DNA of 64,000 bases from Octopus sinensis (taxonomy: Eukaryota), in the NCBI RefSeq assembly GCF_006345805.1, contig NW_021831041.1, positions 62,001 to 126,000 on the forward strand, read 5' to 3'. Shown in pieces: positions 15,801 to 63,143 of this stretch; position 1 is the first letter of the stretch; every line of letters begins with the position of its first letter. Made by a program: the position numbers and the translations under genes. Below the pieces are notes generated by a model, which was not told the DNA's origin, did no database searches, and saw only the letters and a list, made by a program, of their open reading frames with translations.

Positions 15801-18800
15801 TTTTTGCTTCCAATTGTGCGGGGGATGATTCATTTGTGGTCGACGTCACCTGTGTCGGTTTTACTTAATTATCAATTTTATAAGACGAATTTTCTACAAA
15901 AATATGTTCTACTGAACTGAACGAGGAAGAATCATTAATACTTGAAGTCGCAAGGAAAGGAGATTCTACCAATTATGTTTGGAAGAAGAACGGATCTATA
16001 TTGAAGGAGGACGCACAAACCAAGTATTTACTTAATCCATAAAACCTAGAATTATACATAGCGATCAAAGTTGCCGTCTCCTCATTCAAAACACGACATG
16101 CGAGAATAGTGGACTTTATCAGTGCTATTACTCCTCCGACCATAACTCCCCTATTTTCCAGAGCAAAGTTATTATTAAAGGTGAGTGGAAATCAATATTC
16201 AGCCATTCCACTCAAAGTGGCAGAGGAAATTACGTTGGAATTGAAAAACGGTGATTCGTCCAGACAAACAGCAATCTGTGGCGAGGATTCTCTCATATCT
16301 TTCCAAGTGAGTGGTACTGGAGGACAGACTCCTATCATTGAATGGCGGAAGGACGGGTCGTTGATTAGTGGCGGTATTCTACCAATAGGAACAGTGGTAG
16401 ACTACAGAACAACCTGTTTCTACCAGGGAGAGACTGCCAGTCTCCGAATGAGCAATATCCGGGAATCTGATGAAGGGAACTACACTTGCCGAGTCATATT
16501 AGGCACCCAATCGACAGAGAGGGGGAAATATTTGTGGATAACTAATTCGAGGGATAATTCGAGGTAAGAAAGGTATTTCCATTGTTGAGGAGTGCCCCTT
16601 CTTCAAATTCATTCCGGCCGATTGCAGTACAGTAGAGAACGAAGGAAGAACTTTTGTGGTGAACTGTGGAGGGACGCCTATTCCAGAAATAACTTGGTCA
16701 CTCAATGGAAAACAGTTGCATGATGTAGAGAATGGGGTGTATTGTGTAGAGCAGGCGATATTCCCTTACAAACGACGGGTTTCTTTCGAAATTGTTCATC
16801 AAATCCATTCGACTTGAGGACGCTGGAGTTCTCGAAATCACAGCCTCCAACGAATTTGGGACTGCCAAAAAACAAGTCAATCTAGTCGTCGAACCCAGAG
16901 GAGAATTATTCGGAACTCTGCAGCGTACAAAGTATGCGACTGGACTGTATATTGCATCGTGATGTATTCAGAAAACCATTCTTTCTGGAAACCATCCACT
17001 CCCGAGATTCCGAGAACATGTCTGAAATGGTCCTCGAGTGTCAACTAGAGCCCTCAGTGGAAGCAGATGTCGTGTGGCTTTTCAATAAGCAAGAAATAGA
17101 CAAGAAATCTGGTCATTATAAAATCGAGAAAGAAAACTCCGGGATTTGCAGATTAACTGTTTACGAATTGACTGATAAGGATGGAGGCCGTTATTCATGT
17201 TTGGCTCACAACAAGTATGGAGTTACTCGAATACACGCCAACATAAGTCTTGATGGTTGCTTAGTAAAGTCAATGTGTAGAACTTGACAAACCTGACAAG
17301 CCGAGTGAAACAATCGGACCTGTTTCTGCTGAAAAGGGAGATTCCGTGACGGTAAGAATATCCACGGAGAATCATACCGCGATGACATGGTGAGCAACCG
17401 TAATGTGATTGCAGGACTCGAGATGGAATGACTGGATGGGTTAAGTGCGAGAAAGACGAGATGGGAGTCAACTATTTCAGGATCGAGGGTGTAAGTGAGC
17501 AGAGTGTGGGGAAGTACTTATTGCGAATTGACGACACATTGAACGAGTGTGTTAGCGAGGTGCAAGTTGGATTAGGTATAAAAGTGCAATTATACTTATT
17601 TGTCAACGTTAGCGTAAAATGACAAACCAATCGATGTGCCGAGTATTACTTATAGCAACACACTGCATTCTCCGCTTATTTAGTTTTTGCATGTATCTTA
17701 AGGAAATTGATTTGCCGACCGTGGCGATGTACTGCAATATTGCATATATTAAGATATGTGCTCATGTTAGTACCCTCCAAGCGTCCATTCAACCACGCGG
17801 TATTGCAATCGCGGCATTTCTCTGTTCTTATCTAATACTCGCAGATTACAAGCAGGAATACGATTTTGTCCTCCACATCAGCCCCAAGGAGGTCTCAGAT
17901 GATCTACAATTTGCCTGCGATATAAGCAGCAAGACGAAACCGCAAGTTCGATGGTTTTATAATGACCACGAACTGGAGGGCTTTGGGAACTACGTCTTCT
18001 TCAAAGTTGTTGCACAAAACCATTCTGTAGAACAGCCAACAACACGACATTGGCATTTCGGACAAACTGTTGGACCTTCCAACTGATCCAATTTATGCCC
18101 GTGACTCAGAGAACGTAATCAAGTACTACGCATCCGTCGACGTAACAGGTCGAGTGTGTGCCCGTATATCCTCACAGCCAGTCCGACTAAAGAAATTCCT
18201 CCTAAATTTCTAATTGCAATCAACACTACCGTAAGTGATGAGACAAGGCTGGAGACGCGAATATCCGGAAGGCCGAAACCGGAGGTCACGTGGTACAAGG
18301 ACGGGGAAGAGTTGATGACCAGTCAACGTCGATTCCTGGAATATGGGCAGGAGGGGAAAATCTCACTTGTTATTCTCGATATATCTACTGCCGATTTTGG
18401 AAAATACACATGCATTGCACGGAATCCAGCAGGATATGATATTGCGGAGACATCCCTCACTTTACCAGATCACTTGGAGACTGCGACGACCATTGTGGAG
18501 GAGGATTTGGTTATTAGTGATGGTCAGTCGATGATCACAGGTATACAGATTGTTATATCCAGACATGAAAACTCGCCAAGATATCAATATTTCTGGAGGA
18601 GAATTTGATATTCTGCAAACGTATGATTTGCTATTTCATGTGCAGAACATACGATGTTCGGATTCTATTAACTGGGCTCGACAAAAAGAAGCAAACTATA
18701 GAACCGGAAACACATCTATCAGATTCACCTGTCCAAGACGATTCCAAAGAAAGTTCTTCCTCGGATGAGAGTTCTGACTATACAAGTGAGCCATGTGGGA

Positions 18801-21663
18801 CGACTGGGTCAGAACGTGGAATATCGCCAAGATACTTAGTCGAAGAAAGTCTGACTAGGCCTGAGGCAAATCGTTTATTTCCGACAGAAAAAGACGTGAG
18901 AATAATTCACGAAGACCTTCCAATGCCGCGAACGTATCAAGTAACAAGAGAACCTGGTTTTCTGGACAAGCAAAACGCAGAACGTTCATTTCCTTTAGAA
19001 AGTGACAGAGATATTCGAATAATTCAAGAAATTTCCATCCCCAAAACTGTTCAAAAATTAAATGAAATCAGTTTTCCAAAAAAGTCTGAAGAAAGTGAAC
19101 GAGACATAAAAATACTTAACCAAGACAGCCCATTTCCAATGCCGTGTCAAAGATCAGAAGAAATTACTTTTCCAAAAAAACCTGCTGAAAATGAAAGAGA
19201 CATTAAGATAATCCACCATGATTTTCCCATACAAATATCCAAAGAAAACAATTTCCCCAGTGAGCCAGTAGCGGAGAGGTTGTTTCCAACGGAAACTGAG
19301 AGAGATATCCGAATAATTCACCAAGACTACGTATCAAAAGAAATCAGTTTCCAAGCAAGCCAGTCGCAGAGAGTCCACTTCCTTCTAAAAGTGAGAGAGA
19401 TATCCGAATAATTCACCAAGACTACGTATCAAAAGAAATCAGTTTTCCAAGCAAGCCAGTTGCAGAGAGTCCTTTTCCTTCTAAAAGTGAGAGAGATATC
19501 CGAATAATTCACCAAGACAAATCCACAACAAAAACATTCCAAACATCCAAAGAAATCCAATTCCCGTACAAGCCCGTTGCTGAACGTAAACTTCCTTTTG
19601 AACGAGACATCAAAATAATTCAAGAAGGCGTTCCCACCACCAAAACTTATCAAATATCAAAAGAAATCAACATTCAAAGTAATCTCTCAGAAAGTGAACG
19701 CGACATCAAAATAATTGATAAAGATGTTCCCACCCCAGAAGCATCTCAAATACGAAAAGAAACCAGCTCTCCGAGCAGGCCGGAGACAGAACCTACATTC
19801 CTTTTGAAATGGAGAGAGATATCCGCATAATTCATCAAGACCTACCCAAAACTGTCCAAATATCCAAAGAAATCAATTTTCCGACTAAACCTGTGGCAGG
19901 ACGTACAATTCTCGCTGGAAGTGACCGAGATGTCAGAATAGTCTTTAAAGACGACCAAATATCCCGGAATGAATACCCCCAAGACTATCCAATTATCAAA
20001 AAGTCCGTCTCCCCTGCCTCTGAACGTGATATTCGAATAGTGGACACTGACTCTCCAGAAATATCTAGCCATAAATCGAGTCCTGGCAAATCATTTATGA
20101 AAAAACTTGATATTCGAATAGTGCCGGGAAAATGTGCTGAGAGTGACATTGATTCGGAGGGTAACGTTTCCCGGGACATTTATTCTTCTCAAGAGACGTC
20201 TTATCCAACAACAATCACTGAGCCAACCAGTCAAATAACGTAAATAACAATCGCTGAATTGTAGACTCGAATGTGAGGATGAAAGTGCTAAAGACTCAGT
20301 AAGAGGGGACACGAGTGAATATGGTGAGCCCCTTTCTAATCTGTAGATGTTTTAAATTATGAAATTGTTCATAAAGATGAGAGTAACACCACAATACAGA
20401 CTGTCTCCACTCTCGTAGACCCTAAGAAGGAATTCTGCTTCGATTTGAGGTATCTCGTTATTATATTGTGAGTGAGAAAACGACCTCTGACGACGAAAGC
20501 GACCTCAGGTGAGCAATTCTCAATAATTGGCTTAGTAGTAGATTGCGTCTTGATACGTCGCAACCAAGCGAGCCTCAAGTCTCTCGGAATCTTTTGGACG
20601 GTGAGACCACGTGTTTTTATTGAAGTGAGGAAAATGTTTCCCCAAATATCTTACGATTCGGGAATAGCTCCAAATATCAGTATGGACTCATCCATCGCCA
20701 GTCGAGTCAAGCCCGTCACAAGAGAGGACTCGATTAAGAATGTATTCTTCTTCATTCACCGACAGTTCACCCGCCGACTGAGAAACATTCGCACCAAAGA
20801 AAAGAGCGTGGCGGAATTTGTGTGCGAATATTCTTCGGGTGGTGTCAGTGCTCAGTGGTTTCACCAGCAGTCACCGGTAGAAGAGGGGACTGGGAAGTAT
20901 GAAGTCACTAACAGCCATCGAGTTTCGAGACTTGAAATCAAAGATTTGTGTCTGGGAGATTCTGGTGAAGTGGAGTGCATTATCAATGGACGGTCGACCT
21001 CCGCTCGTTTGACTGTCGAAAGTTGTCCTCGCATTAACCTTCCAGAACTTGTCGACATTTTCCGGACTAAACTGAAGAGTCAAAATGTACGTGAAGGCGC
21101 ACCCGCACACTTTTGGGTAGAACTGGACGTGGATGGAGTGGAGGTAGAGTGGAGAGCGGATGATCAAGTTATTGAATTGAGTGAGGCGGTGGCGACACAG
21201 GACGGACCAATCCACTCTCTGAAATTCCACAATGTCAAACGGAGTGACCATGCCAAGTCAATATCAGCACATTGTCTCGACTTTAGTACTTCCGCCTTCA
21301 TATCAGTGATTGGTTGTGTGTCTTTTCTTATCCCAAGGATGCGAAGAAGAATTGGTGGTTGTCCGTCGTATGGAGGGGTTCCTGGCATATCCTCACGAGA
21401 ACGTGGTTTTCATAATCGAGTTCTCTCGGCCATGTCACGATGTGCGGTGGTATCGCGGGGACCAGCAGATCGTCCCCAATTTATCTAAATACGAAAATTA
21501 CTGCGACAATGGCATCCAGCACTGTCTGGTCATTTCGGATGTTGACAAAAGTGATGCGGGGACATATTATGTCTACTTTGAGGACGTCGGATCTGACCAC
21601 GCTGATCTAGTTGTCCAAGATCCCAAACTGATTGACGAGTTTAGTCACATACAGTTTGATTAA
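9811..21663 (+). CDS. Giant SEC14 + spectrin-repeat + multi-Ig protein (zormin / SESTD1-CCDC141-titin-like) with a central repeat region; dozens of micro-introns
   Basis: Spliced N-terminus (FFADTRDWEGNGMVYLP...AFSIVVD...RWVAIRKKIDWF) resembles the Trio/SESTD1 SEC14 domain. 10.5-14.7 kb is helical with Trp-containing spectrin-like repeats. At least ten I-set Ig domains follow (e.g. WFYND...DSGLYKC, WYKDG...DFGKYTCIARN). Exact exon boundaries only partly resolved. Confidence 0.8.
18872..20126 (+). repeat. Coding tandem repeat: 13 copies of an (E/D)RD(I/V)(R/K)II-type motif, including a near-perfect 96-bp unit
   Basis: Units start at 19298, 19393 and 19489 (95 and 96 bp spacing). Motifs TEKDVRII, SDRDIRII, SERDIKIL, NERDIKII, TERDIRII and others. 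Confidence 0.9.
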
Positions 21664-22573
21664 TTAACTCAGAGTTAATTATTTTTCTAATTTCGTTGCT
21701 AATATGAGTTAATATTTATTTCCTTTTCTGTCTGAGTGCATATTCAAATAGTTGGACTTAACATATTTCTATTTAATGGATATAGTCATGACAAATCCTG
21801 ATTTTAGCTTAATCAAGACTGAAAATTTGACATATCCAATTATAACTGCGCTTTGAGAAATGTGGAAATGTGCTGAAGTTCTGAATAGTCTGTGCATCTT
21901 TATATCAAATACAGTTTGTTATGTTTGAACATTGATGACATTCCCTCGAATGACTTTAGAGGATTCTAAAATGTGCATGGAGGTGCAAAAAATACAGAGT
22001 TCATAAAATTCACAGTTTCAAACTTTATTTAAATTTTACAGTTTAAACTAGAGAATACATAACCAATTTATATCTCAATAATAAGGTTTATCACTTGCAC
22101 AAATTCGGGGGAAATATGCACTGACATTTCCTTTCATTAAAATTTGGTCCTGTCCTTAAAATTTTGTTCAAAGATGGCAAATAAATTCATTTTTGTTTTT
22201 AAAATTTGAAATAAAATGCTTGTCTATTTTCTTTGAACGGATTACTCTTCCTCACGATCTTTTGAGCTACAACAAAACTGATCCAGTTCTCAAAATATAT
22301 TTTTATCTATTATAATTGCAATTTCGAAAATCCAATAAAGTGTTTATTTTTCTCGGAGTTTCCTCAGCCTTGTAGCACGAGCAAGTAAAAGGAAAACTGC
22401 GGGCTTGATTTGTTGCGTATAAAAAATTATTTATAAAAACAGGGCATTTTAACAGTCATCCTTTTTGCCTGAGAATTAAATCTTTCTTATTTAAGTACGA
22501 TTCTATATATTTATTTCTAAAAATATATGCATTAATTAAATACTTATCAAATAAAACAAAAAGTAAAAATATA

Positions 22574-23351
22574 ATGTCGTCCGAACGCTATAGCTTCTCG
22601 TTGACCACTTTCAGGTTGTAAATGAATATTAACCGACAGTCCAACTGGCAAGCTCAATCAAATCGAGCATGCACTGGCAGCCGTAGCAGCAGGTGCCCCG
22701 TCGGTGGGAATCAAAAGTGAGCATAAAGATGGTCATTTGTAGCCTCTCAAGGCGTGGTGTTAGCAACCGAGCGATATCACCGGACTGTGTTATACGACGT
22801 GGAAAGTCTGCACAAAATAGAACCAATTGGCAAACACTCAGGCGCCACATTCAGTGGAATCAGTCCCGACTTTCGTGTGATTATCAAATTCATTCGCAAA
22901 CAATGTGCCAACTACATGTACAAATACGACTCAGAAATGGGAGTGGAGACTCTGGCACAAGGAGTGTCCCACATCATGCAGGAGTACACTCAGTCAGGGT
23001 AGTCTGTGTGCACACGCAAGGGGAGTCCGTCCATTTGGCATGTCCCTCCTGGTGGCTGGGTGGAGTGAGGGGAAGGGCCATCTCTACCAGTGTGACCCCT
23101 CTGGCATCCACTTCCCATGGAAGGCGTGTGCCATTGGGAAGAACCATCTGTCTAATAGACTGTTCCTGGAGAAGAGATATGACTCGACTATGATGTTGGA
23201 TGACGCAGTCCACACGGCTATTCTCACATTGCAGGACAACTTTGACGGGGCTATGACCGAGCATGACATTGACATTGCTTTGGCTACTCCCTCAGGGTTC
23301 CGGCAACTGTCTGCGGCTGAGGTGAAGGACTATTTGTCCATTCTTAAATAA
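22574..23351 (+). CDS. PSMA2: Proteasome subunit alpha-2; introns of 25, 26 and 22 nt
   Basis: [56 protein letters not shown]...WKA. Confidence 0.96.
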
Positions 23352-23439
23352 CTAACTAGTGAACCATTCTTTTTTAGAATAAAGTGGTTAACCTGCCAAA
23401 ATAATAACTAACGATTCCTTTATTAAGACATTTGTTATA

Positions 23440-23782
23440 TTAATTGTTCTTTTTGTGTTTGAGGACGACCCACACGATTATGACGACCAGGACGGTGAGG
23501 ACGACCCCTCCTATTATTAGTTTCATCTGCGTGTTGGACAGGTATAACCTTGAGGTTCTTCCACCAGTATTTTCGACGGAGGCGATTGGCACTTGTGTTG
23601 AAGTTGGAAGCCCCTTGTTGGAGCATGTCTGCTCGTCCGTCCAATTCGCTTAGTTTGCTGTCACGTTCCAGCACTTTCTCGACGTTTACCTTCATTATGT
23701 CCACCACATAGGAATTAAAGGCAATTTATACTTCGTCGACTTGTGCTCTTGCCATTTCTAGTTTGTTGTTTGTTGGATTCAT
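23440..23782 (-). CDS. VAMP: Synaptobrevin/VAMP2-3-like R-SNARE; 2 introns, the first apparently GT-AT
   Basis: AQVDE|[36 protein letters not shown]...RKYWWKNLK|[10 protein letters not shown] plus a transmembrane segment. Confidence 0.93.
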
Positions 23783-24099: not shown

Positions 24100-26048
24100 A
24101 TGAAAAGTAAAGAACAGTGGAACCACCTCTACTCAATCCCACAAAGTAATGTGAGAACAATCTCACAATGCCTCTCCCTCGAGCGGAGACAGGGCAGTTC
24201 TACCTGTCGATTGACTCTCGCTAACTTATTTCTTGAAGCTGGAAATTCGGTCATTTCGACATATTCAAGTTATTTGAATAAAACATATTTCAGCAAGTGG
24301 AATTTCCGCATCAATAAAAATTCCTGATTTAGTCTCGGGTGTCCTACATTTCCAAATCGGACCAGACGACGAGAGTCACCCAGGTTGCCCCAAATTATCT
24401 CCTCTCAGCACTGGCCGTCTCCGCAGGGTCGAGGATATATATTTACAAAAATTCACGTCCATTCTACTGCTACAATCTCCCCCAGCCTGAAGAAGATAAG
24501 AGAATCGACTCAGCACTTGTTTGACTGTGTAGAATAACAACAAGGAAAGTCTGAATGAGGAAAAAACGGAACTGAGGACAGTCGAGTAATTTTCCTGACT
24601 GAATAGCAGACAGTCGGGAGTAAAAACAACGTATTTAAGTAACAGTCGTCGTTTCATGGAGAACAAAGTGAATGTTTAGGTCAAAAATTGTCTAGTCAGT
24701 GATCTGTTGCATGACCTCTATCAGAAAGAGGAATACAAATGAAGACGAGGTTGAGCACTTGGTTGTGGGGACTGAGGACTGTCGTATTTCGATCATTGAA
24801 ACGACGTGTTTTAAAGTGATAAAACAAGTGTCCATACACCCATCAATCATTAGCTGAAATTAGAGAACATTCCCGTTTTCATTTCCTGTCTTGGATCCCT
24901 CAACATGACGTGCGACATATTTGTCAGTACTCGCTCTGCGCACATTTATCTCATCGAAACGTTCGGATATTGCAGTAAACATTAGTAACACGTTCAAGGC
25001 ACATCCAATTGTGCATCTGAGTGTCCCAGTCGTCGGGATCTTCTCGACCATCGAAGGCGTGGTCGTAGCCTCTCAGGACGGGCTGCTTCAGACGATTACT
25101 AACTCTGTAGTCATCAGACTATATTTAAGGGAAGACAAATCTGGGCATTCCAAATGCCGGCTAAATTTGTCAGCTTCAGAGGAGTGTACTTAGGGAGAGT
25201 TTCGGAGTGGCTTCTGGTCGTGGCTCTCCGCAACAAGCAGATTCGTTTGTACAACAAGAAAAACTTGTGCTCGGTCCTCGATCTAGAATGGAGCATTCAA
25301 GCCGTGGCATTCGGTCGTTATGGGAAATTCAACAATGTCCTGGTTGTGGTCTCCGAAGGCAGGGATAATAAATTCTTAAACTTAGACGGGAATCTCGAAA
25401 TGTTTTCCACGACTGAAAAACGTTGTTGAACTCCGTTGTGTATGACACGTGCAAGGAATATGGTCAAACAGGAGAGAACCGACTCAAAGAAATTGGCAGA
25501 GAAGAGAATTCGATTAGTTTGAACTACTGCTGATTCACACAGATATGCACAAAGTCTACAATTATGACTGCACTTTTATGAAGCTAAAAATACTGAGGGA
25601 ATACATGTCATCAACCAACTACTTGCCTGTCGCCAAAAACGACGATTTGAGATTAAAAATAGATGTTAGCAAAACATACAATATGAGTTCAGTTTGAGGG
25701 GATTGGTCCTGTTTTTATAATCAACATCGACGTCCAGAATGTCGGGCTGAAATCTGAGGTGACCCACGCCTTTGTCGTATTCGACTATAACGATGCCAAC
25801 TACCAACTAAATCCAAGTATTATCCAAGTAAGAATAACTCCTAATGTGCCCTGGTTCCAATGATCGCACCAGGACTGACATACAAAGCCAAAACTACCCT
25901 TTCTTGTTCCCAGGACGCGGGTTTTTCAGAATCCATAAGGGTTGGCTACATTTGACTACTCTAGACAATGCTAATCAAGAAAGATAGTCCGGGACCTCTA
26001 CTAGTCCTGGATCTGGAGGTTCCTCCAAATCAAGGCACTGACATTTAA
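24100..26048 (+). CDS. BBS1: BBSome subunit BBS1, multi-exon
   Basis: LAVSAGSRIYIYKNSRPFY, EHLVVGTED, FGRYG, MHKVY and VPMIAPGL match BBS1 blocks. One segment near 25400 needs a 1-nt correction to keep frame. Confidence 0.88.
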
Positions 26049-26098
26049 AATAAATATAAGTCGACTGAATTGCTAACAAAAGCACAAAATAAGAAAAT

Positions 26099-26507
26099 TT
26101 AGTTTGGGAAAACATTTCTAAAAGACAAATAAGCGTTCACAGTTTCTGCGGAGAGTTCCTTAATGAGGGCGAATTCAGCACAATTGCTGTAACGAAGTGT
26201 GGTGACAGGGTCGGTATAGGGAGCCTACATATGACAGTCAAACCAACTGGAGTCCCTGAAATATCCGAATACCGTTTTAGAGGCCTAGAAGAGTCCCCCG
26301 ACTCAAACAACTCATCTACCCGTTAACCAAGGGATAGAATACAGTGGTAGGGAACATTCGAGGTTCTGTCTGAGTGGAGAATCTGCCTTAAATATCGATG
26401 ATTTCTCCACTTTCTTTGTCGTTCGGGGAGGTTTGCCTACTTCTCCATTACATAAGTAGTGCCTTATATCTTTTATTTTTAAAATTATATTCTGTCGTAA
26501 TGACCAT
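26099..26507 (-). CDS. INO80C: INO80 complex subunit C (Ies6, YL1-C domain); 3 introns, absent from the ORF track
   Basis: Spliced ...LRQILHSDR...RPLKRYSDISGTP|APYTDPVTTLRYSNCAEFALIKELSAETVNAYLSFR. Confidence 0.88.
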
Positions 26508-27479
26508 CCAACAACTCAAGATTCTATTTAATTAATATTTAAATTTAGAAAAGTATTTTATGTTTATTTTCAAAAATATGGCCAAACAAATAATTCCCAA
26601 TTGTCCTCGTTTTTGGTAATTGTTGACTCCGTTGGTTTATCTATTTGTGTTGGCTTTCAAAGCCACTCTAAAAAAACGAGAATCAATACCAAAATTGAAG
26701 CTTCAAATACAGAAAAAGAGTCTTCCGAACAAAATATCAAGTTAAAACAGATATGAACGCTATAAAAGATTTGGTGTATACATTACTGCTAAAACGTTGG
26801 TTTTTAGATTAATACAAGCTCAACAGCAAAAATGCGTACTTCCAAAAAAAAGAAATAAATAAAAAGAAAAGCAGTCGCTAAGCATATCGAGTGAATCCTT
26901 CGCAATCCGGCAAACGAAGACGCCCGCTTGGACAATATGTTATTTGTCTTGCATGCTTACTCTATTTATCCACAGACGTCTCTGTCAATTTCAGGATGCT
27001 TTCAAATACGGATTGCAAATAGATTACCAAAGATAATCATTCTGGCTTCTGATCGCTCTACCAGTGGCACATAATAGATTTAAATACATCAATTAATTAG
27101 TTTAATTGACAAAGATTAGCTGAATAATACTTCTGATGTAATTTTTCCATGCAAAATAAAATGTCTCATAAAACACTTTCTCGGCTGCGAACCTCGGTTT
27201 ATAAGGAATCAATTTTTATGGTCATTATCAAGGTCATAATTTTTGAGTAATATGACTGAATCTAAATTAAGTCTAAATATTTAAATAGTATTTAAGTCCG
27301 GGTATGCCAGGTCAAGACACAACAACAAACAAGCTAAAAAGCAATTATTTAACTAAATAATCACTTTTGTTATTTTATACGTAAAGGTGATAAGACTTGA
27401 ATGGAACTGGATGATCTATTTGAATATTTCTCAGAATACTTAATTTTGATTCATTAATAATTAATCCGTGCCGTAAACG

Positions 27480-28085
27480 ATGTCTGCATTTATTCTGCTG
27501 CTTAACCTTATGTTCACCACAAAATCAGGTATTATGACTATGCTATGTCTAGATCTGGAGGCAGTATCGATTAAATTTCATTCATTAACTGTAATTTGTT
27601 ATAAAAAGTTAATAAAATAGCCGGATCTTATAAAAGCTGTCAAAAAAGTATAAATTTCTGTACATTCCAGGGCCTGTCAGATGTCGTTGAAATAAATGTT
27701 TCGAGAGGTGATTTATCTGCATTTACAATTAAAATAAACGAGTGAATTACAGTTTTTAAACAATAAAAACTAGAGAAGGAGAAGAATTTAAATTTACAGT
27801 TTCAGGAAATACAATTACTATAACAGTCCCTGAGCTAATCAATAATATTAGAAAACCTAAAACAGGCAAGTTTTACAAAATAATATTTCCAAAGATTCAG
27901 ATGACCAAAAACTCTACGACACTCAGGAATTTATAGATTGGGAAATGGAGAAACAAGTACGTATCAGTGTTATGTCAAGAAATACTACCCTCGATATATA
28001 ATATACGTTATACTACTATTGGCAGGGGGGACGTTTTCGGATGATCCAAACAGTGTGCTTTATCCTTCGAAAAAGTATGCTTGCC
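27480..28085 (+). pseudogene. Orphan micro-exon gene copy A (signal-peptide-like start), 3' end broken by a CRE fragment
   Basis: Removing six 23-32 nt introns gives an open frame MSAFILLLNLMFTTKSDLEAVSIKFHSLT|PDLIKAVKK|GLSDVVEIN...|EGEEFKFTVSGNTITITVPELINNIRKPKT|DSDDQKLYDTQEFIDWEMEKQ|KYYPRY. Exon and intron layout is mirrored at 34159-34837. Confidence 0.65.
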
Positions 28086-28099
28086 ACTTCTCATCCCAG

Positions 28100-29049
28100 C
28101 AATCGGAACAACAATACTTGATTCTGCCAATGGAGTTCAACAAGGTGACCCTCTAGGTTTTCTTTTATTCTCCCTCGCAATTCACCATACAACGAGATCG
28201 TGTAAAAATGATCTTAACATGTGGTATTTGGATGATGGAGTAATTGGAGGAACCCCTGAGGGCATCTTGGAAACGCTGAAGTCTTTTGTTTTTAAATTTG
28301 GAGCGCTTGGGCTTGAATTCAACTGCGGCAAATGCGAAATTGTGAATGTCAACACGGACGAACTTTCCTTTCGTAAGTGGATGACCGAATTCGACAAACT
28401 ACTACCTGGATGCACCTTCCCCCTCAAAGAGGACTTGATTTTTCTTGGATCTCCTATTTTTGAAAGTGGTATCAAAGCTGTTATGAAGGCTAAAATTTCG
28501 GAATTTTCCCTTCTCTCTGAAAAATTACGTTGTGTGGATAGCCACATTGGGCTCTTTTTAATGAGGAACTGTCTATCTATTCCGAAGTTAACATACTTTT
28601 TGAGGACGGCCCAATGCTATCAGGAAACAGATCTTCTCGAAGACTATTCCGAGCATATGAGAGCTTGCACTGAGGACATCCTCAACGTTAGCTTCGATAC
28701 GCAGTCGTGGAGACAGGCGACTCTTCCAATTTCCCTGGGAGGGATCGGCTTGATCACCCCGGCAGATTCAGCGCACGGCGCATATTTTTCCTCAGTACTC
28801 TCATCCAGAGATATGATCGACACTGTTCTTTCTCAAATAAACGAACAGAGGAAATCATTTGCTGTGGATGATTGCGTCGCCGTATGGGAAAAGCTGGGAT
28901 TGCCATTGCCATCTGATGTGACCTGCCAATCGGAGTGGACGTCGAAAGTCCACGCCAATACGTTTTCATGCCTAAAGGAAACCATGGACCAGAGAATGTT
29001 GGCTTGTTTACAAGCGGGCAGCCAGCCCCTAAGCGGCGCGTGGCTAAAC
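28100..29049 (+). mobile_element. Internal CRE-clade RT fragment (no endonuclease), reading frame intact
   Basis: GVQQGDPLG, WYLDDG, LGSPI, LSIPKLTYFLRT, WRQATLPISLGGIGL, ending at SGAWLN. No stops within the 324-codon ORF. Confidence 0.92.
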
Positions 29050-29081
29050 AGTTAGTTAGCTTTTCATTTCAATTTGCTTAG

Positions 29082-31464
29082 GCGACTCCCAGGCGGACCC
29101 ACTTTCGGAAATGAATGCAAAAAATGAGTTTTACAGAGTAAGGATGAATAACTATATCAGCAAATTGAAGGGGATGGATTCGTCGATTACGAACAACTAA
29201 ACCGACTGTTCGACTTGAGTTCTTCCAAACAAGGAACCGTCGACGTGGAAGGGACATCAGGCAACCTTCTGAACGACAGTAACGATTGCGGTTATACAAG
29301 TCGAATGGAACACTCTTCCCACGGGGCAAGGAACAACAGATCAAGGAGACTATGCGGAAAATAAGTGCTGGCCAAACCCTCAATTAACTCGCGAATCAGT
29401 CCAAATGACAATGCCAGAAACGACGACATTCTCAGCCCTCCAACAGGAGTACAGGGGAGTCCAACGTCTGGAATATTCAAAAGAAATATCGCAGGATCTC
29501 AAGGAGAACAACAACCATTCCAAAAATGATTTTGGCCTCAAACTGTTCAAAGTAGAGGACACTGAAAGTTCCGTTTCCCACTCATTCTAGAAACTCAGCT
29601 GAGAGACATGGACGAGATCATGGCTGACTTGGAAATGCTCGGAGGTGGTTACGTCATCTCAATTACGTCATAGACCGACAATGCGGTGTCCCCGACTCAA
29701 GGCTGGACATGTCTCCTGTACATGTGACATATCAATGGTAGAAAGTGGAGGATCTCCCTGAAAGGAAGGTCCAATCAAACGAGCATGTTGGAGACTTCCA
29801 GCGAAAAGTTGGGAGTTTAGACAAATTCCAAGGGCATCTCTGCCGAATCAAGTCACGACCAACTCCAAGTTTTGAAGAAGGAAATGGAAATTCAAGTTTG
29901 TCTGTCCCACATTTGCAGGAAGACATCATCAACGAGTATCAACAGGACAATGTAGCCTTACGAGACAAGGTCAAGAAAGTAACTGTCGAAATGGAGGTCC
30001 TTCGAAAGTCCCAGTCTTGTCAGATTCAAAAACTGAATCGACAAATTGGTCAATTAAAGTTAAGTTTTCGTCTCATTTCAGAAATGAGTTGGAAATGAGA
30101 CCAACTCCTGTGTCGGAGTGTCAGGACTGTGTTATTATGCGCCAGGAACACGAGACACTGCAAGCTCGGTTGGAGACAGCAGTCAAGGCAGAGCAAGAGG
30201 CATCGAAAAAGTGCCGAGAACTTGTCGACTCGGTCGAAAATATGAAGAAAGACAACCAAAGACTGACAGAATCGAATTTGTCGCATCTTCAAATTATTTC
30301 GGATGGTGAACAGAACAGGACTTTAATGCAAAATTGTTTGACTCAGGCGACATCTGAGGCTGCCGAAAATGCAGCAAAATACGAAAAAAAGAGTCGAGAA
30401 GAACGAATTTGTCACAGAAAATTGGTATTTCTAAAAGAACTAAAATTCGAGGGCGAGGCAGACAAAACGATCGAATCTTTGCGGAATAGTTTGATGGAAT
30501 GTCAAGCCAAATTGGCCAATGCAACCAAAATTCGGGCAAAGACGACTTATATCGAGAACAAGGAGACAGTCCAGACTCCTCGTTTTAGTCAGAGGAAGAT
30601 GAGCGAACACGTATCGCATATTCGCGCATGCTCAGACTCGTTGCGGACGGAAATAGGTGTTATGCAAAAAAGAGGTTTTGGATTTCCTGACTGTCCAGTG
30701 GTGGGGGGACACAACTGGCACGTGCTGAAGGACCTCCAGTCCCAACTGCACTGGCGAGTGGGGAAACTGAGTGAACTGCTCATTACTGACATCTCCACGC
30801 CAACAAATGAAAATATCCCCGCATTTGTTGATATTTCGACTAAAGAACTTCCCAACGAGTCAATTTCTCGAATGGTTAGATGTGGTGATTTATTTAGCTT
30901 GGAAACATTGAGATGACTCAAGACAAAGTTCTCAAGAAATTAGACTCCCAGACTGTCCAACAACCGATCAAGGACATTGTGACAAGTCAGCAGGTTGTCG
31001 TGTGTCCCCAACAGGCTCTGGTCGAGGCTCTCCAAGCCAAGATTGCCGAGAACGAGGAATTGACCAAACAAATCGAGCTTTTTAAAAAATCCGAAGGGCA
31101 GCTCAGGAAGGAATTGGAGCGACAGGAGATCAGTTTGGCGAGTGCAAGGAGAACTCAGGAACCGGTCCTCGATTTTGTACATTTGTAGACAGCCCGGGAA
31201 TTCGAAAGTCTGATGAGCAGGGTGGAACAGTTGGAGTGCCAGTACGAGAGAGCGGTGGCTGAATCGACCAGACAAGTCTCTGAGTTGGCACTGCTGGGGG
31301 CTGAAGGGACTGACCATACACATTGGGATATACTTTTGGATCAGAGGGATCAAAAAATTAAAAAACTTAAAAAACATTTGACACAAATTTATGAAATTCT
31401 TCAATACATATCAGACCAGGGAATTGACATTCCGATTCCAGAACAGTTTAAAGAATATCTCTGA
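29082..31464 (+). CDS. CEP162: Centriolar coiled-coil protein, CEP162-like, multi-exon
   Basis: N-terminal KNEFYR|QIEGDGFVDYEQLNRLFD and C-terminal FESLMSRVEQLE...WDILLDQRDQKIKKLKKHLTQIYEILQYISDQGIDIP resemble the conserved CEP162 blocks as recalled. Long coiled coils lie between them. Confidence 0.62.
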
Positions 31465-31567: not shown

Positions 31568-32194
31568 ATGGCGTGCTGTTGCATCAAACTATTATTTCTG
31601 TTGGTTGCCATCATTCTGGGTTGCACATACTACTCTCAAATCAGAAAAAACACATTTAACGACAACATTCTAAAACAAGCAGCTACAATCCCCCAGAGCC
31701 ATTCCTGCCCAAAAATGATTCAATATCTCCGCGGGAGATTCCCCAACGAAATAATGTCCGGTGAAGATATGAAATGGCTGGGCTATGCAGCCAAGGGGTT
31801 CTCAGGCTTTCTCTGTCCTGTCTACTCTTCCATGTTCGAGACCGTCAGTCTCCTTTACTTTCCCTTCGACCAGACTTCCTACGCTGGGGGGTCCATTTTG
31901 CGTCTGTCCTACGTCGTGCTTAAAGGGAAATTGGTCATCAACAACGGAGAGAGGAACACGACTTTCCTGCCAGGGGATTTGGTGACCAATTTTGAAGGCA
32001 ATTTGATTCACGTGTCAGCCGATACATATGTTCTTGGAAGTGGCAAAGGACTGTCGTTGTTGGGATTCTGGGACATTGCATGGGGTACTTATTTGCCCTA
32101 TATGGACGTGGTCGGGTTTGCCACAATGCTCGTAGGTATTGTGAGGCAGTTGGTCTTTACGTATTTCCAGTACGTTTTGCCATCTTTTCTTTAA
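31568..32194 (+). CDS. SIGMAR1: Divergent sigma-1 receptor / ERG2-family protein, intronless
   Basis: N-terminal TM, LRGRFPNEIMSGEDMKW (cf. LRRLHPGHVLPDEELQW), cupin FLPGD, C-terminal helices. Confidence 0.78.
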   Translation: MACCCIKLLFLLVAIILGCTYYSQIRKNTFNDNILKQAATIPQSHSCPKMIQYLRGRFPNEIMSGEDMKWLGYAAKGFSGFLCPVYSSMFETVSLLYFPFDQTSYAGGSILRLSYVVLKGKLVINNGERNTTFLPGDLVTNFEGNLIHVSADTYVLGSGKGLSLLGFWDIAWGTYLPYMDVVGFATMLVGIVRQLVFTYFQYVLPSFL

Positions 32195-33984: not shown

Positions 33985-34095
33985 TAAATACGGGTCATTA
34001 AGTATTCAACTGAAATTTGTTATAAAAAGTTAATAAAATAGCCGGATCTTATAGAAGCTGTCAAAGAAGTATAAATTTCTGTACATTTCAGGGAT
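33985..34095 (+). pseudogene. Orphan gene family fragment C (two introns and one micro-exon)
   Basis: Near-identical to 27593-27671 (ttgttataaaaagttaataaaatagccggatcttata...gtataaatttctgtacatt), with one donor changed from GT to GA. Confidence 0.75.
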
Positions 34096-34158
34096 TGCGA
34101 TCGTTTCAGCGTGCTATCACACAGAACAGGTGACAATAATTAATCTGTCCTATAAACA

Positions 34159-34837
34159 ATGTCTGTGTTCATTTTGCTGCATAACCTTGTCCTCAACACA
34201 AAATCAGGTACTATTAGTATACTATGTCTAGATCGGGAGACATTAATGATTAAATTTCATTCAGTCACTGTAATTTGAAATGTTAATAAAATAGGAGGAT
34301 ATTTTCAAAGCTGTCAGTATAAACTTTTGTAAATTTCATGGCCTGTCAGATTTCATTGCAATAAGTGGAGTGAGATTTGATAAATTGCTGACATGATAAT
34401 TCAAATAAGAAAGTGTATTTCAGTTATTAAACATACAAATTAGAAAAACCGACCAATTTGAATTTACAGTTGCAGAGGAACAAATTGAGATAACAGTCCC
34501 TGAGCTAATTCATAATATTAGAAAACCCAAAATATGTAAGTTTTACAAAATGATATTTTCCAAAGATTCGGACTCTACGTTCCAAATGAATTCACATAAT
34601 GGGAAATAAAGAAACAAGTAAGTAGCCATGTTAAGTTCAGAAATACTACCCTGGATATATAATGTACTTTATACTACTACTTTCAGAGGGACGCTTTCGG
34701 ATGTTCCAAATAGCATGCTTTGTCTTCGAAAAAATTTTTGTAACAAGTTTTCAGCCCACCAAACAAATTTTAAATCTTTCAGAAATCAACATGCTCAGAA
34801 ATTAGATTGCAGAAATAATTGTATGACAAATTTATAA
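34159..34837 (+). pseudogene. Orphan micro-exon gene copy B, with frameshifts and stops
   Basis: MSVFILLHNLVLNTKS|DRETLMIKFHSVT|... collinear with copy A, including intron positions. It carries deletions, a premature TAA and one acceptor changed from AG to AT. Confidence 0.7.
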
Positions 34838-39003: not shown

Positions 39004-39588
39004 CGCACAAGACAAAAGTTCAAAAACATATTCAAATCAGATTAAAAATATTTGTAGTATAATTATAACATTAAAATAATTAATTCCATTGAAAACTAAC
39101 CTAGATCACTCCTACGTTGACCAACAGCAAGCGTCCTATCACGGTCGTGTAAAAATAGGATGCCAATAACTTGAATTGATGAGGAAAAACAAACATTTTG
39201 GACAAATCAGGAATTGTAATGATTAAAGCAACTGATTTGAAAATTTCCAATATTCTTTGCTCGTTTTTCTATGCTCGATGAGTATTTTTTGTGTATTTAA
39301 AGATGCCTTAAAGTTGTCAAAATATTCGAAATCACTTGGAAATTGATTTATTTTCGAATTTTAAATCACTTCCACTTGGATCCCTGCCTATTTGAATCAA
39401 AAGCGCTGCTAATTTAGTTGATAATTGATCTTCATTAGTGACAGGTAATCGCTACCATTCTACATGGCTCTAATTTAATCCACAACCTGCCAAAAACATT
39501 GATTAGCAAACCAAAGCGTATTAAATACTCGATCACTGATTTGTGAAGAGACGCGTAGGCAGAGAGTCAGCATTTGTGCCATTTCCAC

Positions 39589-42500
39589 ATGGAAGCGCCT
39601 TTGGAAGAAAGTATGAAATATTTGCAAATTGATAAACAAAAATTGTTGCAAGAATCTCTTCCTTTCGACAGCAAAAAGTCGTGTTGGGTGCCGGATAAGA
39701 AGGAATGCTACGTTCAAGGAGAAATAATAAAGATTGAAAACAAAATGACTACAGTTTACATCGATGGGATGGGGGAGGTTTGCTTTGTGGAGAAAACAGT
39801 CAAGATTGTAGTCCAAGAACAAGAAATAGAGCCAGTGAACCCACCAAAATACGAAATGTCGACAGACATGTCGACTCTGACTCATCTGAATGATCCGAGT
39901 ATTCTATACAACCTAAGACGACGATATACAAACAACTTGATATACGTTTGCGCAAATAAATCACCCAGACCTATTCGGGACTGTTCTGCATTGCCATAAA
40001 TCCATATCGCCGTCTGCCAATATACACCAAACAAGTAATCCAGCAGTTCAAGGGGAAAAGGAGGACAGAAATGCCTCCTCACGTATACTCCGTGTCAGAT
40101 ATCGCTTATCAGAATATGCTTCAAGGTCCTCTAATAGCTGTCATTTCATTAATCAAACTTTGCTTATTCATGTCAATAAACATCCGTTTAGATCGAGAGA
40201 ACCAATCAATTCTGATCACGTTGCAATTTTCATTTCCAATCATAGAGGCGAGTCCGGGGCAGGAAAAACTGAAAATACCAAAAAAGTCATTCAATATTTT
40301 GCTCAGGTGGCGGGGAGTTGTCCCAAAAAGGACGAAGGGGATATCAAAGGGGTAGAATATGTGTATCAATTTTGAGACTCTCGAGGACCAGATTGTTCAG
40401 GCCAATCCTGTCCTTGAAGCCTACGGAAATGCAAAAACGACTCGGAACAATAATTCTTCTCGATTTGTACGTTTCCGGCATCAATATTGCAGGGAAAATT
40501 TGTCAGAATCCACTTTGGGACGACCGGGAAGATAGCAGGAGCGGACATTGAAACATGTATTCCGTGAGTAATTGAAGCAGATCTCCTGGAGAAATCACGT
40601 GTCACTGATTGTGGACCAAAGGAACGAAATTACCACATTTTCTACCAACTACTCTCGAATTCTATTCCAGAGTACACCGGTTTGATAAAACTGAGTATTT
40701 TCAAGAAAAACTGTTGTTGGATCCGAATCCAGCCAAATACAAGTTTGTCAGCAGAGGGTCACTTACTGTGGACAACATGGACGACCGAGAGGAGATGGTC
40801 CTCACTGATGTCTGTACTTGCACACCGACACAAGCCTAGAAAGCATTTGATGTCCTTGGGTTTACTCAGGAGGAAAAATGGAGTGTTCTCAAATGCACAG
40901 GAGCTATAATTCATCTCGGAGAAATGAAATTCAAGCAGCGACCCAAGGAAGAGCAGGCCGAAACAGAGGACACTGCCGGTTGTATTTGGTTGAATAAACG
41001 TGGTTCAGAGGCGGAGAAGGTTGCATTCCTGCTGGGCGTGAATGCTCAGGATCTCCTAAACTCGCTTTTAAAACCAAAAGTGAAAGTGGGGGCTGAATTT
41101 GTAACGAAAGGCCAAACTCTTGTCCAGGCAATGATTTTCGCTGAATGGTTAGGTGACGAATGCTGTGGGAGCCATGGCCAAGTCAACGTACGAGAGAATG
41201 TTCAATTGGATTGTCAAAAGAGTAAACAAGACCTTGGCAACCAACGTGAAGAGACAGTACTTCATTGGAGTGTTAGACATTGCTGGTTTCGAGATATTCG
41301 ACTTTAATACATTCGAACAACTTTGCATCAATTACACGAACGAACGACTGCAGCAATTCTTCAATCATCACATGTTTGTTCTTGAACAGGAAGAGTACAA
41401 GAAGCAAGAAATCGAGTGGGAGTTCATTGACTTTGGCATGGACCTTCAATCTTGCATCGACCTCATAGAAAAGGTGTCCTCACTCACACAATTTCAAGCC
41501 GATGGGAATCCTCTCTATTCTCGAGGAGGAGTGCATGTTCCCCAAAGCCACCGATAAGAGCTTTATGGAAAAACTATATAACAACCACGCAGGGAAGACT
41601 AGTGCTTTCGGCAAACCAAAAATGCAGAAATCTTCACCTTCTGTTCATTTCGAGATCCATCACTATGCCGGGACTGTATGTTTCTTCTTCATTTGTTAGG
41701 TCGGATACAACATTGAAAATTGGCTTGAAAGAAACAAAAACCCGATCAACGAGAGCGTGGTAGGAATCTTGAGGGAGTCAAAGGATCCCCTCCTTTCAGA
41801 ACTGTACAAAATGAGCGAGCAGAGTAAGTGTCGTGGGACTAATCCAAGATGAGGGCAACAGTGGAAAGAAACGGAAAGGAGCAGCCTATCAGACCATTTC
41901 GTCAGTCCATAAAGTCCATATTGAATAAACAAAATAGGAATCGTTGGGAAAACTTATGGTAAACCTATACAGTACACACCCACATTTTGTCCGTTGCATT
42001 ATTCCCAACGAAAACAAGGAGCCCGGTACTTTGCTGACTTATACGGCGAAGGAGTGATCGACTCTCATCTGGTTCTCCATCAACTGCAATGCAACGGTGT
42101 CTTGGAGGGAATTCGAATATGCCGGAAAGGATACCCCAACAGAATGACGTACCCTGATTTTAAGCAACGATATTCCATCTTGGCCCCCAATGTCATTTCT
42201 CAGGGTTTTGTTGATGGAAAGGTTGTGCTGAGGTGACCCATGGTAGGTCGTCACAGAAAAAATTTTGACCGCGTTGAGTCTGGAGAAGAACTGCAATAAA
42301 CTTGGAGTCACCAAAGTCTTTTTCAAGGCAGGAATCCTGGGTACCCTGGAAGAACTGCGGGACGACCGTCTTGGAAGGATCATCGGCATGTTCCAAGCCA
42401 ATATTCGTGGATATTTGTGCAGAAAGTTTTATAAACGACTGCAAGATCAAAGGTGCCGAAAACCGTAAAATTGTAGAATCGGACTGTCAATCATCCAGCG

Positions 42501-45500
42501 GAACATTCGGAAGCATCTTCAACTACGCACGTGGACGTGGTGGAAGGTCTTTCTGAAGGTATTCCCCCATCACGAAATAGATCAAACCTTTGCTAAATAT
42601 TGCCCGTCAAGAGGACGAAATGAGAGTGAAGGAGGAGGAGTTGGCTGAAACCAAAAGAAAGCTGGAGAAAGTAGATAAACTTCGCGCGGAGTTGGAAGAA
42701 CAAAACAACAAACTGTTGCAAGAAAAGGGCGACCTGTCAATCCAAATCAAGGCCAAAGAAAATAGTCTCGACGACGCCCAGGAGATGATTGACCTCCTTA
42801 TCAGTCAAAAGGGCGAATTCGAGCAGAAAATCCAGGAATTCCAAGACCGACTCCTCGACGAGGAGGACATGAATGCGGAAATCGAGGACGCGAAGCTGAA
42901 ATTAGAGGACGAAATTGACGCCTTGAAAAAAGACGTCGAAGACCTCGAAGACCTTTGGTCGAAGGTGAAAGCGTCAAATCAAATTTAGGCCGAAAACGAA
43001 AACAAAAAATATGCAATTCTCGTCGATAAAACACACCAAGAAACAGAGCAAAAAAACGCCGAAATCGAATCTTTGACCAAAGACAACAAAACTTTGCAAT
43101 TTGACTTGTCCGAGTCGGAAGACAAGTTGAAGGATTCCGTCAAGAAAATAGCTCAGTTGGGAACAGTCACCTCCGCGATGGAGGAGGAGATTGAAAACGT
43201 GAATTTGTGTGTTCAATTTAGATGAGGGAGAGCCTTGCAAAGGAGACCAAAAACAAGTCAACGTTAGAAAAACTCAAGAATAAGCTGGAGTCAGAAATAA
43301 AAAACCTCAAACTCACCATCGAGGAGTCGGAAAAAACACGTGAAGAAATCGAAGCCACAATAAAAAAGTATTTTGACTGCCTTACTCCAGAAAAGACGCG
43401 GAACTATCAAAAGAACGGCAGAAAAGTGAGGAAAACAAGAATTCTGCGACTCAACTCTCCCGGAAACTAAAAGACGTGACCGTAAATAACAGTTCTGACC
43501 GATCAAGGCCAAATGCGAGGAGTTTGGGGAAGAAATGCAGACGGAGAGGCAGCTCAGAACAAAACTTGAAAAGCAGAGGATAGAACTCGAAAGAACCTGT
43601 GACGAACTGAATGAGAAACTTGAGGAATCCGAAAGACAATCCAAGACTCAAGTTTTGTTCTCAAAATTGTTGTAGCTTGAGTTGGGCAAGCGAAGAGAAT
43701 TGGAAATCCAGAAAATGAAACACGAATTGGAAGAAATTGTCCTGAACCACGACACTTCCGTCCAAAACATCAAAAAAAGAAACCAAGAAATGCTCAACGA
43801 AATTGCTGAACAGGTGGAGAAGGGACAAAAAACAATTTCCAAGTATTTTGGCGCGAATTCAAATTTAAGACTTGAGCGAGAGAATAGTGAAATGTCCATA
43901 CAACTGGACACTTTGAAGGACGAGGTTGACCAACTATTCAAAATAAAAGTACAATTTTTGGTGGCTTAAATCTGCAGACAAATTTGGAAAAGTCCAACAA
44001 ATCGTTGGAAGGGCAACTTTACGAGGGAAATCATAAAATCGACGAACACGTGCGTCTTATTTCAGAGGCAAACGGTCGAGTGATAAAGTATGAAAAAGAA
44101 ATGAGTGAAATTAAAAGACAACTCGAAGACTCTGAGACTAAAGTAATACTTTATTTAATTTAAAAGTTCTTAAAACAATCAAAATATATTTCGACGATGG
44201 AGAACCAGATTATGGAAATGGAACAGGACATTGAAATGGCCAGGAAAAACAAACAAAAACAATCAAATGAACTTCAAGCAATTGAAAAGGAAATCTCCGA
44301 CTTACGTGAGCAATTAGAAGAGTCCCAGGAAGCAAAATTAGACTTGCAGCGTCTAGTATCAAAGGCTAACAGCGACTGCCAACAGTGGAAGTCCAAGTAC
44401 GAGTCAGAGGGAGTCTACAGAATTGAGGAACTTGAAGACCTAAAGTGCCACCTGGCCATTTTGACCATTTCAGGAAGAAAATGAGCGTAAAAATTTCTGA
44501 AATGGAAGAAGACTTGGAACAGTGCCAACAAAAATTGTCCTCCTCAGAAAAAACCCGCAATAAACTGCAGGCACAAGTCGAGGACCTCAGTTCGGAGGGC
44601 GACCGAGTTTGTCCACACAATAATAATAACCAGAACATTATGGAATATTCCCAACTCGACAAGAAAAATAAGCAGTTGGAGAAAATTGTAGTCGATCTAA
44701 CTCAAAAAACAAACACACTTCAAGGAGAACTCGACTCGACACGTGGAGAAGTGAGGAATTACGCGGACGAGTGCACCAGACTGAGGACCGACTTGGAGGA
44801 ACGGAAATTGTCGGGAGAATCGGCGAAGAAAGAAAACAAACTCCTGCAAGGTTGACACCATTCAGTCAAAAATAGACGAAATAAAAATTTTGAACGAAAA
44901 AGCGTTGAACGATAAAAAAATATCAACTGAATTGGCCAAAAACAAAAAAAAAGTCGAGAAAGATTTCGAAGAAATTCAGAACGCACTCGAAGAGGCAGAA
45001 CTGGCACTGGAATTCGAAATCAACAAGACAAGTCGCCTGGAAACCGAAATGGCCGAAGTGCGAAATCACGTGGAAACCAAATTGGCTGAAAAGGAAGAGG
45101 ACTTTGAGAACACTCGTCGAAACCACCAAAAACTGTTGGAGTCTGCCGAGGTGTCGTTGGAGAGCGAAATCAGGAGCAAACAAGAACTCCAAAAACAGCG
45201 GAAAAAACTCGAGGGAATAATCTCCGGGTTGGAAAGCGAACTCGCGGCAAGTTCAAAGCGAAACGAGGACACATCAAAGGCCCTAAAACAGGCCCTGGAC
45301 AAACTGAGTCACATGAATCATTCCTTCGACGAGGAGCACCAACAAGTGCTGTTTTTGAAGGAATCCGTGAGCCACTTTGACCGCAAATATAACATCCTCC
45401 ACTCAGAGATGGTCGAACTGAAATCTAACCTGGAAATGGTGGGGATTGTTATTTATGGGGACAGAGCGAGAAAAACCGTCTTTCCGCGGAATATTCAACC

Positions 45501-55103: not shown

Positions 55104-55267
55104 CCAACCAATTTAAGTAATAATAAGACATCTGGTTAGTACATTGATTTCCATTACGGATGACAGCTGTGTAGAGATTTACTGAAATTAAATATTTTTT
55201 GATTTTTATTATTTAAAATTAATTAAACTAAATTTGAATACATTTTCATATTGCGGTTTGAATCGAG

Positions 55268-62900: not shown

Positions 62901-63143
62901 GGTTTCCCGGCACAGCTGGAGCCTCCTGGTCTCATCCGCACAGACGGAAAAAGACCTGATGGGATAACAATTTTCCCGTACACCAACGGGAAGTGCCTTG
63001 TTTGGGACTGCGCTTGCACCGACACCTACTCAGAGACAAACCTGATCGCCTCAGCCTCCTCTCCAGGATATGCTTCACAGAACTACGAAAAAATTAAAAT
63101 ATTCAGAGCTCAAGGACAGGTTCATAGTGCAACCGATTATTGT
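59983..63143. mobile_element. Near-full-length degenerate CRE-clade retrotransposon with 5' inversion: 3' end on minus (59983-60268); 5' UTR, PHD, RT and endonuclease start on plus (60269-63143)
   Basis: 11-bp direct repeats ggaaacataaa at 59972-59982 and 63144-63154. About 70 bp duplicated in inverted orientation (60191-60268 vs 63077-63146). PHD finger, GGIDGLRP, KLDMKNAF, GVQQGDP, WYLDD, KRPDG motifs, with frameshifts and stops. Confidence 0.9.

Follow-up and report, generated by a model that had tools for sequence, protein, structure and literature searches.

The closest described systems to the locus examined here are truncated, dead non-LTR retrotransposons from the restriction-like-endonuclease (RLE) group (R2, R4, NeSL, CRE, and Hero), the chimeric transcripts driven by LINE-1 in mammals, the element-host fusions SETMAR and CSB-PGBD3, and host genes that contain sequence derived from a reverse transcriptase (RT), such as TERT and the rvt genes. 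Truncation at the 5′ end is typical of target-primed reverse transcription, and members of the CRE type (CRE1/CRE2/SLACS/CZAR) insert into spliced-leader genes.

In the literature, tiny introns with reduced "GTa...AG" signals are confined to one dicyemid, Dicyema japonicum, and to myxobolid myxozoans (PMC13644364). In D. japonicum, GC content is 36.7%, repeats make up 49% of the genome, and introns average 38 bp (PMC6736024).

Here we describe a locus in a 64,000-nt stretch of DNA (the whole stretch that was analyzed, referred to as the window), in which an internal fragment of an RLE-type non-LTR retrotransposon ORF lies directly 5′ of a coiled-coil gene. The original prediction was that an intact RT fragment can splice in frame onto a CEP162-like gene, either as its 5′ exon or untranslated region or as part of a fusion protein. 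The explanation that we prefer, at a rough probability of 0.45, is that the RT piece is a young, dead remnant and that the gene is translated from an ATG of its own first recognizable exon, at 29111.

Results

The RT fragment occupies 28075-29050 on the + strand and was identified from RVT_1, from its family relatives, and from conserved residues. It begins shortly before RT motif B (QQGDPLG), passes through YLDD (encoded at 28225-28236) and the thumb/linker, and ends with the GAWLN motif. Against Pfam RVT_1 it aligned with profile positions 115 to 193 of 205 (E = 1.3e-4), and the score fell below the gathering cutoff because only half of the domain is there to be matched. The database held 154 relatives with RVT_1 (best E, 1.9e-66), and the top relative shares 40% identity over 309 aa; with no more than 3 gap positions, the two are collinear. 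Named relatives of the fragment were uncharacterized proteins from insects, sponges, plants, and Diplonema. The family pattern C..QP.L..G precedes GVQQGDPL, and this suggests that element homology already begins at ∼28078. The ORF of one protein, P0001, starts at the matching RT position, and we considered whether such a start is a feature of the whole family; homology runs further upstream on the contig of P0001, and the match was set aside as a coincidence.

Both among database relatives and in the further copies of the window, GAWLN leads into ALP..LG..RIA.GLRLG, then a CCHC motif, and finally a PD-(D/E)xK-like restriction-like endonuclease; the CCHC/endonuclease part is present in the copies at 451-1110, 62671-63125, and 63852-63226. 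A profile of these family tails (n = 31), covering all three features, had no match in the six frames of 28950-29900, and continued element homology beyond 29050, in this or another frame, was rejected. The claim that family homology stops at ∼29050 was thus borne out, with GAWLN (29049/50) as the last matched motif. A tblastn search found no displaced N-terminal half of the RT (motif A) and no endonuclease part nearby. Judged by its RT domain, the fragment belongs to the RLE group (R2/CRE/NeSL); the family carries both the CCHC motif and the endonuclease, and this copy has lost both. It keeps YLDD, starts at about profile position 115, and lacks the fingers and the motif A aspartate, and it is therefore not a catalytically competent RT. 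With both ends missing, and with them motif A and the CCHC/RLE part, it can be neither a working enzyme nor an active element.

Of the 51 positions with a conservation of 80% or more across the family, the fragment kept the conserved residue at 44; the family median is 94%, and the fragment ranked seventh lowest of 43. By this measure it still looks like an ordinary, young element copy. There are 130 single-base changes that could create a stop codon in the fragment, and under neutral decay the open frame implies a divergence of less than ∼1 to 7%, varying with the indel rate that is assumed. The fragment is either young or else selected. The description of the RT as intact holds for the reading frame, which is open over 336 codons with YLDD kept, but not for the domain, whose first half, with motif A, is missing, as is the whole CCHC/endonuclease part. 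It had also been contrasted with decayed RT copies elsewhere in the window. Stops and frameshifts do interrupt the copies at 76-1110 and 60389-63143, but a protein identity of 30 to 39% places these in other families rather than among siblings of the fragment, and they are therefore uninformative on the age of 28075-29050.

Downstream on the + strand, ORF continuity defines a gene of nine stop-free exons. The first recognizable exon (29082-29137) has its first in-frame ATG at 29111, with A at −3, and its frame is open back to 29060 only. Eight further exons follow (29161-29278, 29301-29567, 29591-29647, 29674-29717, 29742-30058, 30082-30874, 30898-31164, and 31189-31464), the stop codon lies at 31462-31464, and the product counted from ATG 29111 has 721 aa. 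The eight introns measure, in order, 23, 22, 23, 26, 24, 23, 23, and 24 nt. Four of the junctions had a single candidate intron, and elsewhere the option of 22 to 26 nt was chosen; the intron at 31165-31188 has an alternative of equal length at 31185-31208. No match to the 277-aa exon or to the 721-aa model was found among 5.8 billion proteins, and the gene matched nothing in Pfam or PDB. Its last exon had a lone match, to a repetitive 6874-aa protein, among 1.84 billion representative proteins. None of these searches supported the label "CEP162-like"; a fast-evolving lineage could mask true CEP162 orthology. The collections searched held no same-species entries for the 277-aa exon, the 721-aa model, or the RT fragment, and an exact look-up of the RT ORF likewise returned none.

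The sequence just ahead of ATG 29111 is unusual for a leader. These ∼30 nt (29082-29110) have a GC content of 67%, within the top 1% of genic 30-nt windows. Five start codons in the window are anchored by homology or context (proteasome alpha, 22574; GDI, 55268; VAMP, 23782 on the minus strand; BBS1, 24100; and an ORF, 31568), and their GC content is 10 to 33% in the preceding 30 nt and 7 to 30% further upstream. Because of this difference, 29082-29110 looks more like internal exon sequence than like a normal leader.

Introns in the clear genes of the window, identified as open frames chained across GT..AG, cluster at 19 to 29 nt. The genes used for these lengths include an Ig-domain gene (12.3-21.9 kb), a coiled-coil gene (39.4-46.3 kb), and a GDI gene (55.3-57 kb). 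All 70 trusted introns were 19 to 29 nt long, save one of 32 nt, and splice-site matrices built from them contained zero information past GT/AG. Splice-site scoring was thus dropped as a way to rank the candidate intron described below. All placeable introns in the window are shorter than 60 nt, and elements sit between genes, with none inside one. The gene upstream of the RT fragment, probably the one previously described as a broken orphan gene, carries BBS1 propeller and GAE domains and is a BBS1 orthologue. Since myxozoans are not known to have cilia, the presence of this ciliary gene favors a ciliated, dicyemid-like animal over a myxozoan as the probable source. Spliced-leader trans-splicing in dicyemids was considered as an explanation for the acceptor, and literature support for it was not found. 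Rfam, repeat, and bacterial-type promoter and terminator scans gave nothing relevant.

The RT frame is free of stops on the + strand from 28045 to 29052. When unspliced, it ends at a TAG (29053-29055) that lies inside a candidate intron of 31 nt, the GT..AG segment at 29051-29081 on the + strand (GTTAGTTAGCTTTTCATTTCAATTTGCTTAG). No other GT..AG join of 15 to 70 nt links the RT frame to the frame of the exons without a stop. Its excision gives ...GAWLN-S-DSQADPLSEMNAKNEFYR, again stop-free, and the peptide across the 29050/29082 join would, if spliced, read ...GAWLNSDSQADPLSEMNAK.... The sequence-level statements of the original prediction on this junction, including the in-frame link from the RT frame to the downstream exons, were all correct. 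The inner part of the segment has 26% GC and 52% T; the segment is longer than 69 of the 70 trusted introns, and its T content exceeds that of 97% of them.

The junction could be that of a chimeric transcript, in which the RT fragment is transcribed, 29051-29081 is spliced out, and 29050 is joined to 29082. Transcription would start in or near an AT-rich TATA repeat (∼28000-28040) or inside the RT piece. The RT piece would then act as an alternative first exon or as 5′ UTR, or else supply the N-terminal 280 to 330 residues of a fusion between an RT remnant and a coiled coil, whose start codon would be ATG 28219 or, by way of a further GT..AG of 25 nt, ATG 28041. The uniqueness of the stop-free bridge, a donor placed exactly at the homology boundary, and an RT frame open all the way to that donor fit such a transcript, as does the exon-like, GC-rich composition of the ∼29 nt before ATG 29111, unlike the five anchored leaders. 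The 31-nt segment also resembles the gene's own T-rich introns at 30059, 30875, and 31165, and its length is not a multiple of 3, with an in-frame stop inside, as is common in mini-introns. That length is an outlier, however, and a chimeric transcript gives no reason why element homology should end at the donor. The RT part, moreover, is an ordinary-looking element copy without motif A and with no evident function. We regard the chimeric transcript as a serious alternative that is nevertheless somewhat doubtful, and a stably translated fusion protein as unlikely, with roughly half of the weight given to the transcript.

To read this junction, its chance level has to be considered. Dinucleotide shuffles of 29035-29110 contained some stop-free bridge in 30% (19 to 31 nt) to 42% (19 to 45 nt) of cases, which counts against the chimeric transcript. 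A GT..AG of 19 to 31 nt begins at a prespecified position for 3% of window positions, and for 9% when 1 nt of tolerance is allowed; with an additional factor of about one third assumed for the reading frame, a donor at the homology boundary would arise by chance at a level of ∼1 to 3%. A donor exactly at this boundary is notable, and it was spotted post hoc, the junction having been chosen from many element/gene boundaries. A naive chain finder threads "introns" through any strand of the window. Thus, an in-frame GT..AG is by itself weak evidence in this short-intron genome, because introns are 19 to 29 nt long without signal beyond GT/AG and because shuffled sequence is bridged so readily. 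Both the coincidence at the boundary and the leader composition are real, and they point to upstream exon sequence. On sequence alone, in-frame splicing at 29050/29082 would be possible, and a dead remnant is at least as likely.

On its 5′ side, the RT fragment adjoins an AT-rich noncoding repeat (27456-28074, + strand; 26 to 36% GC) that shares 77% identity with 34135-34733; within it, 86 nt (27587-27672) match 34008-34093 at 95% identity. The repeat contains TATATAA at 27995-28001, 40 nt ahead of ATG 28041, and the motif is retained in the second copy at 34656. This is the sole AT-rich, TATA-bearing flank that resembles a promoter; the coiled-coil gene has none, save for the 31 nt. Preserved in both repeat copies and positioned as a promoter for an RT-first exon would be, the flank and its TATATAA add to the case for a chimeric transcript. 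Similarity of the peptides encoded past the ATG of the two repeat copies was also considered, and a 1-nt gap difference between them identified it as noncoding similarity.

The 25-nt GT..AG segment that would link ATG 28041 to the RT frame (28075-28099, + strand) is speculative. Joining 28041-28074 to 28100 gives MIQTVCFILRKTIGTTILDSANGVQQGDPL..., which is stop-free to 31461, ahead of the stop codon at 31462-31464. The chimeric frame, whose completeness and freedom from stops also speak for a chimeric transcript, would have 1,059 codons from ATG 28041 and 1,008 from ATG 28219. The join at 28075-28099 falls within element-derived coding sequence and is no better than chance.

The repeats bear on a further possibility: the junction may be misassembled, or a recent rearrangement may have beheaded the gene, which would then be a fresh pseudogene with its frame still undecayed. 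The region is rich in repeats, with the second copy of the AT-rich repeat 6 kb away. The RT piece lacks the 3′ end that target-primed insertion should keep, and the high GC of the leader suggests that the gene once had, and lost, coding sequence of its own further upstream. However, neither N runs nor abrupt breaks in composition occur at 28074/28075 or 29050/29051, and the nine exons with their eight typical introns contain zero stops, which makes us consider this possibility improbable.

The spacer between BBS1 and the coiled-coil gene (∼26.0 to 29.1 kb; 3 kb) houses the RT fragment and, further upstream, a coding-like block at 26093-26456. From 26100 to 26400 this block has a genic GC content (40 to 50%) and no family match. 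If the true first coding exon lay upstream, for example in this block, the repeat and the RT piece would sit inside one unusually long intron, with the T-rich tract and the AG at 29081 as its acceptor. The exon-like 29082-29110 and the acceptor-like TTTCAATTTGCTTAG would suit an internal exon, the composition of the block would suit a first exon, and a GT at 26319, just ahead of the stop of the block, is also in frame with 29082 when read by eye. The mean intron of 38 bp in Dicyema also implies that some introns are much longer than 19 to 29 nt (PMC6736024). Within the window, however, no placeable intron reaches 60 nt and the elements are intergenic; the block has no start codon in AT-rich context, and its in-frame fit is at the same chance level as the others. 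A long intron of this kind therefore seems to us quite unlikely.

Discussion

Our preferred explanation is that the RT piece is a young, dead remnant. Its 5′ truncation would be the usual result of incomplete reverse transcription during insertion. Since target-primed insertion normally preserves the 3′ end, which is absent here, a later deletion or rearrangement is needed as well. The 3′ part may have been lost by such a deletion, which would have halted where the functional sequence of the coiled-coil gene starts. The frame would have stayed open merely because little time has elapsed. Transcription of the gene would begin within or just past 29051-29081, with translation from ATG 29111, and the in-frame GT..AG would be a coincidence, one that arises easily where introns are defined by little more than GT, AG, and a length of ∼19 to 29 nt.

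Several observations support a dead remnant. Truncated at both ends, the piece cannot be a working element, and its collinearity with relatives, its 44 of 51 conserved residues, and the lack of any sign of adaptation to a new role point to a recently inactivated copy. The candidate intron has 31 nt, compared with 19 to 29 nt for trusted introns and 22 to 26 nt for the gene's own, and ATG 29111, with A at −3, opens a complete frame of 721 codons over eight typical introns. Counted against a dead remnant are the donor at the homology boundary, the GC-rich leader, and the presence of an AT-rich, TATA-bearing flank only upstream of the RT piece. We nevertheless give it more weight, because dead element fragments are frequent beside genes, in-frame captures are rare, and the RT piece bears no sign of a new role.

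The more striking alternative is that a young RLE-type element supplied half of an RT domain (palm motif C, thumb, and linker) as first coding exon to the coiled-coil gene of a ciliated parasite, yielding a protein of ∼1,000 residues. We think this improbable, although less so than a long intron or a misassembly. Under such a capture, the donor of the 31-nt mini-intron would have been created at the rearrangement breakpoint. If true, the locus would be a snapshot of gene birth through element capture in a genome with nearly signal-free splicing. A genuine fusion would mean that a host gene captured a retrotransposon ORF in frame only very recently, and it would indicate that splicing defined by little more than GT, AG, and length can make a new exon out of a random rearrangement. 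If the RT piece is instead a dead remnant, which we rate slightly likelier, the case is an ordinary one, and its value lies in caution: where introns are 19 to 29 nt long, chance in-frame GT..AG joins between neighboring frames are common and are no proof of splicing.

The locus can be compared with known systems on either reading. It resembles dead copies of RLE-group non-LTR elements in QQGDPL, in YLDD, and in the truncation of its 5′ end. It differs from them in that the 3′ end is also missing, and the assignment is at the level of RLE type rather than of the CRE clade. With the chimeric transcripts driven by LINE-1 in mammals, it shares the placement of an element fragment immediately 5′ of a host gene, with splice sites that are compatible in sequence. 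Those chimeras, however, involve a UTR or promoter, whereas here ∼300 codons would come from the element in frame, which is rare.

SETMAR and CSB-PGBD3 offer a closer parallel to a fusion, since in both an element ORF is spliced in frame to host exons, as would hypothetically be the case here. Both keep a complete functional domain that is conserved across species, whereas the present fragment holds half of an RT domain without motif A. TERT and the rvt genes likewise contain RT-derived sequence within a host gene, but their catalytic motifs are all intact, and they have stayed under purifying selection over the long term. Motif A is missing from 28075-29050, and this places the fragment outside the class of domesticated RT genes. 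On either reading, the locus is of a kind that is already known, namely, a truncated copy of an RLE-type non-LTR element or an element exonization.

Genes surrounding the retrotransposon fragment

The gene upstream of the reverse transcriptase fragment, a retrotransposon piece at 28075-29050 (+), had been described in the original prediction as a broken orphan gene. The gene found at 24100-26000 (+), presumably the same one, is not an orphan: it is an orthologue of the ciliary gene BBS1, in which parts of the propeller lie at 24339-24521, 24696-24854, and 24854-24982 (+) and the GAE domain at 25687-25860 (+). It lies divergent from a synaptobrevin (VAMP) gene (23435-23782, −), from which an AT-rich spacer of 317 nt separates it, and a proteasome alpha-subunit gene is located at 22574-23351 (+).

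Between BBS1 and a further AT-rich spacer is a coding-like block (26093-26456, +; 40 to 50% GC) that contains one open frame of 77 codons and one of 56 and for which no family match was found. This block could be the 3′ end of BBS1, a small gene, or the remnant of an element, or it could supply a distant first exon to the 721-codon coiled-coil gene whose stop codon lies at 31462-31464. An ORF of 208 codons with a hydrophobic N-terminal stretch (31568-32194, +), likewise without a family match, begins only ∼100 nt past that stop, indicating that spacers in the window can be very short.

Repeats and retrotransposons

An AT-rich noncoding repeat is present in two copies (27456-28074 and 34008-34733) that are 77% identical, and a TATATAA motif near its 3′ end is conserved in both. 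An 86-nt subpiece, 95% identical, is duplicated next to the second copy. The repeat is possibly a small element that is mobile or carries a promoter.

Copies of RLE-type retrotransposons (non-LTR elements with a restriction-like endonuclease) cluster at 60034-63999. A fuller copy (60389-63143, +) has a PHD-like zinc-finger N terminus and several frameshifts. Because it is accompanied by pieces in reverse orientation (63852-63226 and 60258-60034, −), these insertions are nested or inverted.

Intron size and the source of the genes

Domain recognition also identified genes for a PDZ protein (3048-3746), a large Ig I-set protein (16109-21488), a myosin-tail-like coiled coil (44890-45627), a PAS-domain protein (49293-50057), and a GDI/REP family member (55504-56076). 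Introns throughout the window, including those at 12292-21855, 39442-46278, and 55262-57151, are 19 to 29 nt long (mode, ∼24 nt) and carry GT/AG as their splice signal, with nothing further. Together with the ciliary gene BBS1, these ultrashort GT/AG introns point to a dicyemid-like animal as the source of the genes in the window.
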